Assembly (NCBI RefSeq): GCF_052425735.1
Contig: NC_135761.1
Span: 31,930,001 to 31,994,000 of the forward strand
Source: Oculina patagonica
Lineage: Eukaryota
DNA length: 64,000 nucleotides
Direction: 5' to 3'
The translations under genes were made by a program, and so were the position numbers. A model generated the notes under the pieces. It was not told the origin of the DNA. It worked only from the letters and a program-made list of their open reading frames with translations, and did no database searches. This document shows, in pieces, positions 3,271-7,379 of this stretch (within the stretch, counting starts at the first letter, position 1; the number at the start of each line of letters is the position of its first letter).

Positions 3271-4523
3271 GTGAGATTTATAAGACATTCATTTCGTTCA
3301 ACAGCCATATGAAATACACGCAAGACATTATACACGTCAATGACCTTTTATGTAATTTGGGAAGTATGTAGGACCGGAGATAACGACATATCCAACAAGA
3401 TATGTTTCCCCAGTGATGGCTTTTTTACATGTAAGAATAACTAACTGCTTATAGAAGCATAAAAGTGAATGTCTGAAAAATCGATGAAGATCCTGAAAAA
3501 TGTGCCAACATCTGAATCGTCTGATATCACGACAAAAAAAAAATCATACACACTTCCCAAGGTTTCATTTTTTGTTAACTCTTGTGAGTCTTTGCATGAC
3601 CGCAGAATAAATTTTCACAAAATCACTGTTTTTGTACCTGAAATAACCATCATTCGAGCGAGTGTTGTATGGTTAAACACCCGAACTAAACTATGCTTCC
3701 GGGAAAAATGCTGTTTTCAGTGCTTGATGTCTCCTTGCGTATGAGATGTGGACTGTGTTGTTTATTTGGAATACAACTTATTTCGCATCGATTAATTTAA
3801 ATAACAATGAGCGTGTGATTTTATGGGTCATTGATGGTCGTTCATGCAAAACATCTACTAAATCCTGCGCGTATGAAACCGTAAACCTACAAAACAATGA
3901 CTGGGCTCCTTTGGTAACTGGTCCAGTATATGCTATTACACCTGTTGAAATCTCTCAGCAAACATGACGTCTGTGAGCGAGAAGCCAAAAAGTGTAAAAT
4001 TTCGAATACCAGTCTTAGGGATTTCCAAGTTTTATATATGCCACATATTTCAGTTACTTACCTAGCCCTACAAACTGACAAATTATGAGTGTTTTTATTA
4101 CAGCGGCCACAATTTCTTTGTCTGAACTGACACTTACTCTTAATACTTAAACTTTACATTCTTACGTTTCAGAAAAATGGGGAACAGGCAGACGAAAAAG
4201 AAGGAGAGGGAGGAAAAAACTACATAAGAAAAATTAAATGCCTTATTGGATCAGATGCCAAAATTGTTGGAAAATGCGAATGCTGCTGCCTTAGCACATA
4301 CAGAAGCGCTTGCCAAATGACTGTCAAAATACCATAAAGTTCCGTGTGTAAGCCGCACCCGTAGATAAGCCGCACCCCCGATTTGGAAGCTCACATTTTT
4401 GAAAAAAAATATACAGACCATAAAGTTTGAAGTTCAAGTGAAGTTCTATTGGTAAACAAACAAGGGCAAACAAGAACGGTTTCGAAACACTGCGCGGCGA
4501 TTGTTGCAATGTTTAATATAAAT

Positions 4524-6135
4524 GAAGGGAGGACTGGTACGGGCAAGATGGCGGAATAGACGTGTCCGTAAGAGCTCCGCACTTATTAGCTAATTTAAAC
4601 CTAATGTTGCCCATGTTGGATGATATTGTCTATTCATCCAAGAAATCTATTACACTAAAGCGAACATCAACACAGAGAAGTGATTCTAGCACGTCTGAAT
4701 CGAGCTCTCCGTCGGATAAGCGACTCAGGAATACGAAGCACATTGAACTGGAAGGCGAAGTCCAAGAAGTCTTCGAAGGAGCAGTCGAAGCCTCGCTTGC
4801 CGTAGATATGTCCGAAATGATGGCAGAGAAGCTCGACGAAATATTGGCCAAGCTGAATAAGCTTGACAGCATCGAAACAACTCTAAATAATCTTTGTTCA
4901 AAGATGGCCACAGTGGAAAGTGACGTATCGAAGCTGAAAGACGGCGCACGTGTTACTGATGGTAAACTGGAGAAGATGGATAACGGTTTACAATGGATGA
5001 ATACAGAAGTTGAAGACTTGAAATTGAAGATAACGCTTCTTGAAACAGCTAAAAAAGATCTACACACGCAGCAACTTTATGCAGAAGCTTATAGCCGAAG
5101 GGAAAATTTGAAATTCTTTGGACTAGCTGAGAGAGAAACAAAGAGCAGCTCAAATAGCAGCGAGGTGATCAACACGCGTAATATCCTATTTGAGTTCCTG
5201 GAAAAAAGGCTTGGCCTTGAAAACCCAGAAAAAGAAATAGAGTTACAAAGAGTTCATCGCATTGGAAAACCAACTGCTGGAAAAACGCGACCAATTATCG
5301 CAAGATTTCTTCGCTTTCAAGATCGTGAGATGGTATTAAAAGCTTCCTTTCGTCTACAAGATCCGGAGATCAAAGTGCTGGAAGATTATCCGCAAGAGAT
5401 TATCGAACGCCGACGAAAACAGATGAAAAAGTTAAAGGATACCAAAAAGAACGGTATGAAAGTCTCATTTAGTAAAGCCGAACCAGATAAACTCTATATA
5501 AATGGTAAATTCATTCCAATGTAAAGCTCTGTTTACGTTCGGACGCGTCTTTTAGGTCGCAATTCAAATGGTTTATGAATTATTATTGTTAGCCGCAGGC
5601 CAAAGAGCTAAAATTGTAAACATGGGCTAATAAGTATCGAACGGAGTTCTGAATGCTTGATGGAGTTATCTTTATTTCATCTTGCATTCTTCGAGGGGAG
5701 CTATGTGTGTGTTTATTTATATGTGATTTTTTGTTGCATTTTAGTTAGTTTCAGTTTAGTGAGATGTTTTTTCGCTGAGATCACACAATTGGGCACTATA
5801 CGAAGAAATTTTCCCTATGTATTGTACTCAAAACAGTCATTAATCTATTCATTATGGATGTTCTTGTTTCTTCAGCCTTCTGTCGTTTATTCAAAATTTA
5901 GCTTTCAGATTTGGATCTTATTATTTATGCATGTTTAAAATATGTCAGCTTGTATGTAATTGTGTGATGAGTGAGCGAGCGAGTGGGTAAGTAGGTTTAA
6001 GGTTTAATGTAAAAACTCGTAATGTTGTTAAGTATTGTTAGTTGTATAAGTAGTAGCTTGTATTGTAAATAGTGTATGTAACTATGTGTTATGCAAATAA
6101 AAATTATTAAAAAAAATAAAAATAATAATAAAAAA
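4524..6135 (+). mobile_element. ORF1-only L1/Tx1-like retroelement (HAL1-like) with A-rich tail and 88-bp TSD
   Basis: 4436-4523 is identical to 6136-6223; A-rich tail at about 6095-6135; a single ORF1 and no ORF2. Confidence 0.85.
4604..5524 (+). CDS. L1-type ORF1p (coiled coil + RRM + CTD), intact
   Basis: Heptad region, [53 protein letters not shown]; first ATG at 4604. Confidence 0.9.
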   Translation: MLPMLDDIVYSSKKSITLKRTSTQRSDSSTSESSSPSDKRLRNTKHIELEGEVQEVFEGAVEASLAVDMSEMMAEKLDEILAKLNKLDSIETTLNNLCSKMATVESDVSKLKDGARVTDGKLEKMDNGLQWMNTEVEDLKLKITLLETAKKDLHTQQLYAEAYSRRENLKFFGLAERETKSSSNSSEVINTRNILFEFLEKRLGLENPEKEIELQRVHRIGKPTAGKTRPIIARFLRFQDREMVLKASFRLQDPEIKVLEDYPQEIIERRRKQMKKLKDTKKNGMKVSFSKAEPDKLYINGKFIPM

Positions 6136-7379
6136 AAGTGAAGTTCTATTGGTAAACAAACAAGGGCAAACAAGAACGGTTTCGAAACACTGCGCGGCGA
6201 TTGTTGCAATGTTTAATATAAATTGAGACCTACGAAAGCGAAATTTCACTGGTCATACCTCCCTTTAAGTTTGAGTTCACAATATCTAAAACTTGGATGC
6301 TCTCTTGATATAATTTTTTCGAGATTATCACTTCTAAACACTACTGAAACACTTGTAATCGTATGCGAGTGATAAATGCTTAGTGGCTAAACTTTGAAAT
6401 GTAGAGAGGAGTCTGGGCACTAAAACAAACATGGTGGCACTTTCTTCGGAAGAAACCACGTTTTTATTTCAAGATTCTTGGAAACTGCTACCCGCAACAG
6501 GTTAAAAACTTCATGCAGAAAATGAGTTGTTAATCCAACAGATGCATTTGTTGTAAAGGTCAATAAAAAAGTGAAGCGGTCGGCCATTAGCCTTGTGAGT
6601 ACTTGCGTTTATCTTGGTGCTTTCTCGCATGCGACGGAAAGACATGATTCGAAGTGACTGGCAGGTTCACTGCAAACAGCTTTGCAGAGGAACTAAAAGG
6701 CAGTGAACAACAAAGTTTTAAGGTTGTTATATGTTTATTCAGTGATGTCTTGAGAAGTTTTTTATGAATATTAATAAGCCTTTTAGAACTCCAACCAGAG
6801 ATGCTTCCGTAGATAAGCCGCACCCCCGATGTTTGACTTGAATTTAGAGAAAAAAGGTGCAACTTATACACGGAACTTTACGGTATGCTTTGTTGTCAGA
6901 TAGTAGTAATGAATAAAATGCTCGAGGAACTCTATTCTCTTTGTGCTAATTGTTGTGCACCGTTACAGACATTTTAAATTCTGTTTTTAGTTTAATTATA
7001 CAGCGGATTTTTTTCAAGGATACACTCTTTATGTAAGATTGGATATCTGCTTCAGTTAAAAGAGTTCTATCCTGGTGATTTTTTTCTGTTTTTAATAAAC
7101 ATGGCTAATGCACATCAATGCAAATGAATATCAATGGAAAGATATTAAATATATTGCAGTTGATTGAATGACGAACTGTCACTTTATTAGAATTCAAATG
7201 CAAAGGGTTTTGCCCAACGGGGATGGTAAAGCTTTGACTGGTATATGATGGCATGTGCATTTTGGAGGACCATGGATGCCTTTTACAAACAAACTGCCTA
7301 TACGCACTGTATTCTCTTTGCAAATATTCTCATGTTACTTTGGTGCAAACTAAAATATACACTTCCTGTATCTTCACAG

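Follow-up and report, generated by a model that had tools for sequence, protein, structure and literature searches.

The locus at positions 4436-6223 of the analyzed window (the whole stretch of 64,000 nucleotides from the Oculina patagonica genome; all features below lie on its forward strand and are given in window coordinates) holds an L1-like insert with a single intact reading frame between two identical 88-bp repeats. It raises the question of whether this insert represents a non-autonomous, ORF1-only retroelement family, as the initial annotation had proposed, or a copy of an ordinary LINE that has lost its second ORF. Comparison with its relatives in the same genome indicates that the insert (4524-6135, 1612 bp) is very probably a one-off, ORF2-deleted derivative of an autonomous L1-clade family that carries a rare long target-site duplication (TSD), rather than part of an ORF1-only family.

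The element into which the insert has landed is 858 bp long and is bounded by terminal inverted repeats (TIRs), whose 31-nt arms lie at 4329-4359 and 6856-6886 (87% complementarity). Its left part upstream of the duplicated segment (4329-4435) and its right part (6224-6886) were delimited by the inverted repeat and by alignment to other copies, the left part being collinear with 14 of them. In a genome search with this host element the best 40 of 485 candidates were scored, and all 40 matched at full length with 89-92% identity. The copies measure 847-883 bp, and TA was present at both outer ends in 15/15 of them. The uniform size, the hundreds of copies and the lack of a long ORF fit a MITE-like TIR element. 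When the empty site was reconstructed in silico by joining 4329-4523 to 6224-6886, it was collinear with each of the 14 other copies compared (90-92% identity), and the pre-insertion site is therefore as well defined as had been supposed.

The two 88-nt direct repeats (5' copy at 4436-4523, 3' copy at 6136-6223) were 100% identical when compared within the window. The first two A of the repeat are ambiguous with the A tail of the insert, so that the duplication has a length of 86-88 bp. The segment is present only once in all 14 other host-element copies examined, which had been suggested as a check, and the repeat is therefore a genuine, unusually long TSD; a tandem duplication pre-existing in the host element was rejected on the same grounds. 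A private duplication in this one host copy before the insertion is formally conceivable and would require the L1 to have landed exactly at its midpoint.

The insert begins with an 80-nt 5′ UTR (4524-4603), to which five 5′-complete copies align from window positions 4530-4533; its first 7 nt (4524-4530) are extra in comparison with most other copies, which start with GGACTGG. It is followed by an intact ORF1 of 306 amino acids plus stop (4604-5524; ATG at 4604, stop codon at 5522-5524, no internal stop or frameshift) and by an inter-ORF spacer of 417 nt (5525-5941), the distance that separates the end of ORF1 from the ORF2 ATG in all full-length copies. The sole remnant of ORF2 are its codons 1-4 (ATG TCA GCT TGT, 5942-5953), which were recognized by alignment to a full-length reference copy whose ORF2 ATG (L031:1912) aligns to window position 5942. 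Thereafter come 155 nt of the 235-nt 3′ UTR (5954-6108), which match more than 25 copies at their 3′ ends with 95-97% identity and include AATAAA at 6096-6101, and an A-rich tail of 27-29 nt (6109-6135), as read from the sequence. The tail is interrupted by several T, whereas the tails of other copies are mostly pure A and 15-35 nt long. The description of a 1.6-kb insert with one intact ORF1 and an A-rich tail between identical repeats was thus confirmed. What had been taken for a non-coding 3′ UTR of about 600 bp after ORF1 is actually the spacer, the four ORF2 codons and the 155 nt of 3′ UTR together.

Judged by sequence profile and predicted structure, ORF1 is a homolog of L1 ORF1p with coiled coil, RRM and C-terminal domain. 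A profile of 39 ORF1p relatives matched human L1 ORF1p (2ykp, E-value 1.9e-10), an alignment-based AF2 model (pLDDT 79) matched human L1 ORF1p (2yko) in Foldseek (E-value 3.6e-9, TM 0.64), and one ORF1p relative at 49% identity carries PF02994. With the single ORF1 sequence, the Pfam scan gave no match to Transposase_22 and only weak coiled-coil noise, as did phmmer against the PDB; AF2 run on the one sequence gave a poor model (pLDDT 49.5), and a protein-atlas search returned unnamed clusters. The profile and the predicted fold bear out that the element is L1-like.

Between the positions corresponding to window 5953 and 5955, eight other copies (98-99.5% identical) hold 3773-3788 bp (about 3780 bp). 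In full-length copies this stretch is one ORF2 of 1236 amino acids that encodes an APE endonuclease, a reverse transcriptase and a zinc knuckle; full-length sister copies matched Exo_endo_phos (3.7e-16), RVT_1 (3.5e-36) and zf-RVT (1.3e-10) in Pfam, and residues 5-875 matched human L1 ORF2p (8uw3) with an E-value of 1.1e-107. The full-length element thus measures about 5.39 kb (5′ UTR of about 75 nt, ORF1 of 306 aa, spacer of 417 nt, ORF2 of 1236 aa, 3′ UTR of 235 nt, and poly(A)). Both ORFs are open in some of the 5′-complete copies, many copies are 5′-truncated, and with poly(A) tails, TSDs and 5′ truncation the family displays the hallmarks of target-primed reverse transcription. On the evidence of these sequences the parent is a young, low-copy, autonomous L1-clade LINE family of the coral genome, and it is probably still mobile. 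An autonomous LINE with a matching 3′ end, for which a search had been recommended, therefore exists in the form of full-length copies with ORF2. That the window copy itself is young also held, given its identity of about 99.5% to its relatives.

The initial annotation had further invoked an enzyme with widely separated nicks on the two strands. The TSDs of 11 other family copies are about 7-17 bp long, so that the 88-bp duplication is an outlier event and not a family property, and a family enzyme with habitually distant nicks was rejected. In 9 of 17 family copies the tail is directly followed by G, and this is the case in the window copy as well.

Compared with its relatives, the window copy lacks 3771 bp, from codon 5 of ORF2 to a point 72 nt downstream of its stop. 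At both breakpoints, which were compared in 8 copies, the sequence CTTGT is found, and this 5-nt microhomology now marks the deletion junction (5949-5953); the deleted segment begins with TTAAAA (or GTTTAA) and ends with CTTGT or AATTCTT. A second loss, of one 8-nt unit (TTGTGTGA), lies 14 nt beyond the junction. The one-unit form of this repeat was seen in none of the other loci examined, the two-unit form in 22. A 120-nt junction probe (window 5895-6014) was searched against the 529-Mb assembly and, among the best 40 of 41 candidates, matched over its entire length nowhere but at its own locus, the other 39 scored matches all stopping at the breakpoint. Multiple copies sharing the ORF2-less structure, which had been proposed as a check, were consequently not found among these candidates beyond the locus itself. 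With ORF2 present in each of the other copies examined and no second occurrence of the junction found in the assembly, the outcome is the one that the initial annotation had itself named as speaking against its proposal, a one-off deletion, and the notion of a non-autonomous ORF1-only family was rejected.

The origin of the deleted copy is very probably as follows. It was inserted by target-primed reverse transcription into the 858-bp TIR element, with a first nick at a family-typical site (A tail, then G) and a second-strand break 86-88 bp downstream, as against the usual 7-17 bp of the family, from which the long TSD resulted. The 3771 bp, nearly all of ORF2, are missing between the two CTTGT pentamers, and one 8-nt unit 14 nt further. 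As to when this loss took place, we lean slightly toward the reverse transcriptase having jumped template or slipped in the course of this same aberrant insertion, rather than toward a later microhomology-mediated deletion in the genome. The TSD and tail of the window copy are expected equally from a template jump on a full-length RNA, from a later deletion and from retrotransposition of an already deleted form in trans.

Decay after the insertion is a serious possibility, if somewhat short of an even chance. A full-length L1 with its 88-bp TSD would in this case have lost ORF2 later, when MMEJ or replication slippage joined two CTTGT pentamers separated by 3.77 kb; the missing 8-nt unit would go back to another, small slippage. 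The 5-nt microhomology fits either process, and small indels are frequent in the ORF2 of sister copies (3773-3788 bp). The window copy has also accumulated 8 private substitutions in 1.42 kb, of which 4 are CpG transitions; it is therefore not brand new, and a later deletion had some time to occur. Such a history, however, requires a single young copy to have undergone two independent rare events (the long TSD and the 3.8-kb deletion) as well as a small third event within 30 nt, and a comparable large clean deletion was found in none of 10 other long copies.

It is improbable that the window copy is instead the first, or the only surviving, offspring of a nascent half-L1 in a cnidarian, descended from an ORF2-less source copy or RNA and mobilized in trans by the ORF2p of a sister element. 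An intact ORF1 without ORF2, a complete 5′ end, and a TSD and tail of its own do give it the look of a retrotransposed half-L1, an autonomous element with open ORFs is available as a partner, and the account in PMC5753468 (citing Smit 1999, Bao and Jurka 2010) describes HAL1 as non-autonomous ORF1-only families of mammals that were derived repeatedly from L1. Against this, no source copy was found, no second copy with the junction was detected in the 529-Mb assembly (best 40 of 41 candidates), and the ORF1 differences between this single deleted copy and its nearest copies (2 synonymous and 2 non-synonymous) carry no signal of selection. Were this improbable course the true one, the locus would show a half-L1 lineage at its very beginning in a cnidarian, and the 88-bp TSD could be a mark of trans-mobilization.

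Very unlikely is an assembly artefact, in which the assembler would have made the deletion or the 88-bp duplication in a repeat-rich region. Logan contigs of four public runs all continue at 5953 into ORF2, from other copies, and have the majority family letters at the 8 private positions of the window copy; they include no piece that bridges 5953/5955 and no empty-site or full-length allele. Since such contigs drop low-depth variants of multi-copy repeats, however, this absence is uninformative. The contig is moreover a chromosome-scale sequence of 64 Mb, and the perfect TSD, the empty site that aligns collinearly and the microhomology at the junction are biological signatures rather than patterns of collapse. 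The removal of ORF2 as an intron from a spliced, SpIRE-like L1 transcript before retrotransposition is scarcely credible and was rejected because, clean as the loss is and almost exactly as it covers ORF2, GT..AG ends are absent at every breakpoint placement within the CTTGT overlap and the adjacent loss of the 8-nt unit would be left unexplained.

The favored reading, a single deleted copy of an autonomous family, implies that the coral carries a young, probably still mobile L1-clade family whose machinery occasionally yields long TSDs, as human L1 does in cultured cells. The locus illustrates cleanly that a single step, the microhomology-flanked loss of ORF2, may suffice to give rise to an ORF1-only derivative. 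An event of this type necessarily precedes any HAL1-like family, for which there is no evidence here. The result argues against listing the locus as a new non-autonomous family or citing it in support of an unusual endonuclease; beyond annotation it has little importance.

Several known systems can be set beside this locus. The host element resembles Stowaway-like and Tc1-mariner-type MITEs in its TIRs of about 30 nt, TA at the outer ends, non-coding sequence and hundreds of copies, but its 858 bp are large for a MITE. Like HAL1, the window copy is an L1 derivative that keeps ORF1 and lacks ORF2; HAL1, as presented in PMC5753468, comprises multi-copy families that spread in their deleted form, whereas the deleted form in the coral, with its unique junction, occurs at one locus alone. 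From L1-clade LINEs in general the window copy differs in having no ORF2 of its own (4 codons left). Like human L1 (ORF1p 2yko/2ykp, ORF2p 8uw3), the parent family has two ORFs, which encode an ORF1p made up of coiled coil, RRM and C-terminal domain and an ORF2p in which an APE endonuclease and a reverse transcriptase precede a C-terminal zinc knuckle. Its copies, too, end in poly(A), are truncated at the 5′ end to varying extents and have TSDs with a mode near 15 bp. The family differs in its very short 5′ UTR (about 75 nt), its long inter-ORF spacer (417 nt) and its insertion sites, which are without the TTTT/AA pattern and mostly have G after the tail. Finally, TSDs of more than 20 bp (L-TSDs) are a recognized minority class among de novo L1 insertions in cultured human cells (PMC4245944, with data of Gilbert et al. 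and Symer et al.), where an enzyme with a modal TSD of about 15 bp likewise produces a minority of much longer duplications. The coral case differs in being a germline-fixed or assembled copy, one of 12 examined, and its 88-bp TSD is a rare long TSD of the kind already described for human L1.

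The two direct repeats that flank the insert, the 5' copy at window 4436-4523 and the 3' copy at 6136-6223, were each 88 nt in length and 100% identical to one another, so that the initial annotation was correct in describing an ORF1-containing insert between identical repeats inside a MITE (the size of the duplication being read as 86-88 bp, as the two A that open each repeat could also be counted as part of the tail). The interrupted host element is bounded by 31-nt inverted repeats (window 4329-4359 and 6856-6886) and measures 858 bp once the insert and one repeat copy are taken out. 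A genome search returned 485 first-look candidates for this element, which is present in hundreds of copies, and 40 of the 40 scored matches were full length at 89-92% identity. The empty site built in silico was collinear with all 14 other host-element copies examined (L042-L055), and since each of these carries the 88-bp segment once, as had been predicted, the repeat is a genuine target-site duplication (TSD). The host-element family (window 4329-4523 and 6224-6886 together with L042-L055) is non-coding, with terminal inverted repeats of approximately 30 nt, lengths of 847-883 bp and TA at the two outer ends of each of the 15 copies, and is probably a Tc1/mariner-type (Stowaway-like) MITE.

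The insert itself (window 4524-6135, 1612 bp) contains an open ORF1 of 306 codons (first ATG at 4604, stop at 5522-5524) and ends in an A-rich tail (6109-6135) preceded by AATAAA (6096-6101). The approximately 600 bp after ORF1, initially annotated as a 3' UTR, were found to be composite: a 417-nt inter-ORF spacer that is a feature of the family (5525-5941), twelve bases or four codons of ORF2 (5942-5953, the ATG of full-length ORF2 aligning to 5942), and a 3' UTR reduced to 155 of its 235 nt (5954-6108). The tail, the TSD and a complete 5' end, extended by 7 nucleotides, show that the window copy is a target-primed reverse transcription (TPRT)-type insertion of an autonomous L1 family member into the TIR element.

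When the 529-Mb genome was searched with the insert, no other contiguous copy was found; a match of 97-100% to insert positions 6-1430 was seen in approximately ten copies, and positions 1432-1612 were matched by more than 25, with approximately 3.78 kb between the two parts where both lay on one contig. An autonomous LINE with the same 3' end, whose existence the initial annotation had proposed to check, is thus present as a parent of approximately 5.39 kb. In eight of the ten loci retrieved the bases equivalent to window 5953 and 5955 were separated by 3773-3788 bp, and in several copies this stretch was a single 1236-aa ORF (ORF2). The family ORF2 contains Exo_endo_phos, RVT_1 and zf-RVT domains and matches human L1 ORF2p (E 1.1e-107, residues 5-875). 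ORF1p as a single sequence was not recognized by Pfam; a profile built from 39 relatives (almost without exception unnamed proteins from metagenomes or corals) matched human L1 ORF1p (E 1.9e-10), and an alignment-based AlphaFold model (pLDDT 79, above 90 in the C-terminal half) matched the human ORF1p trimer structure 2yko (E 3.6e-9, TM 0.64). Based on these domains and matches, the family belongs to the L1 clade by the membership tests and the parent is a bona fide two-ORF autonomous LINE; both frames are open in some 5'-complete copies. The L1-like character initially assigned to the insert is therefore upheld. The sister copies L031-L038 are 98-99.5% identical and differ by small ORF2 indels (3773-3788 bp between the same landmarks), so that frameshifts are already present in several young copies. 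The Oculina patagonica NCBI gene model ACROYT_G013432 (P0001; 408 aa), on the 64.4-Mb contig C4 to which the window belongs, combines an N-terminal part of approximately 110 residues, in which Pfam finds RING-finger domains, with an L1 ORF1p sharing 98% identity with that of the window copy; the match stops at residue 293, near the frameshift of a sister copy at approximately C4:24.0 Mb, and the model is probably a chimera over another family copy and not a real fusion gene.

The window copy lacks 3771 bp, a stretch that begins with codon 5 of ORF2 and runs to 72 nt beyond its stop. In eight copies of full or almost full length, the left side of the breakpoint reads CTTGT followed by TTAAAA, and the sequence retained on the right is likewise preceded by CTTGT, which places the junction within a 5-nt microhomology at which ORF2 was lost. 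No register of the junction has GT..AG ends, and splicing is hereby excluded. Fourteen bases past the junction the window copy carries one unit of the 8-nt repeat TTGTGTGA, a form found in no other retrieved locus; 22 others have two units. Of the 40 matches scored (from 41 candidates) for a 120-nt junction probe, only the one at the locus of origin ran the whole length of the probe; the other 39 ended at the breakpoint. The ORF2-less structure therefore goes back to one event at one locus, which is the outcome that the initial annotation had set down as refuting an ORF1-only family. Against the majority form of four sequencing runs and the sister copies, 8 substitutions in 1.42 kb are private to the window copy (4 of them CpG transitions), and its two TSD copies show 0 differences in 88 bp; approximately one would be expected if all private changes were post-insertion, a deficit that is not significant. 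ORF1 differs from its nearest relatives by 2 synonymous and 2 non-synonymous changes, numbers too small to estimate dN/dS.

As to the timing of the loss, we infer, at close to an even chance, a template jump during insertion in which the reverse transcriptase would have leapt out of the 3' UTR to the beginning of ORF2, with a small slip 14 nt before the jump. One aberrant event would then cover the long TSD, the large deletion and the 8-nt slip, and trans-mobilization would not be needed because the RNA template would have been full length. A later genomic deletion between the two pentamers fits the junction equally well and is only slightly less likely. It is improbable that an ORF2-less source was mobilized in trans in the manner of HAL1, which requires a source copy that is absent from the assembly. 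Most improbable is an assembly artefact. Neither a piece across the deletion junction nor the empty-site joint was seen in the Logan contigs of four public runs aligned to window 4250-6450, and since such contigs drop low-depth repeat variants this absence speaks neither for nor against the assembly at the locus. These contigs span ORF1 and the spacer, pass into ORF2 at 5953, and carry the majority bases of the family at the private positions of the window copy. The public coral runs X1-X20, with five organism labels and "coral metagenome", contained 55-61% of sampled words, approximately the share of the L1 body, and contigs from three differently labelled runs were 95-100% identical to that body; either the labels stand for closely related organisms or for a single species complex, or corals share the family at very high identity.

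The TSDs of eleven other copies (five 5'-complete, six truncated) were about 7-17 bp, mostly 13-17 bp, and their A tails mostly pure and 15-35 nt long. The base after the tail was G in 9 of 17 copies (GTG, GTT, GAG), as in the window copy (GTGAAG), so its first-strand nick is ordinary for the family; its second-strand break, 86-88 bp downstream where 7-17 bp is usual for the family, falls where an AT-rich stretch ends, AATATAAAT|TG. In cultured cells, an established minority of human L1 insertions have TSDs longer than 20 bp, the modal length of approximately 15 bp being thought to be element-determined (PMC4245944). Taken together, the 88-bp TSD is a rare outcome of the normal machinery and not evidence of a different enzyme, such as one nicking the two strands far apart. 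In the 5'-truncated copy L037 (approximately 29.74 Mb on contig C2) a normal 15-bp TSD is accompanied by exact matches of 80 nt and 34 nt between the flanks, located approximately 140 nt upstream of the insert and 50-150 nt beyond it; this copy appears to have inserted into a local repeat.

The parent family behaves like L1, with dimensions unusual for an L1 in its 417-nt spacer and 5' UTR of approximately 75 nt. The TTTT/AA insertion-site pattern of mammalian L1 is absent from the 3' flanks of the copies L014-L030 and L031-L038, and the G after the tail hints at a different endonuclease target preference. In structure the window copy is similar to mammalian HAL1; the defining feature of a family, several copies with the same deleted structure, is lacking here, and the window copy is best classed as an L1 copy that has a long TSD and an internal deletion, which illustrates the first step towards a half-L1.
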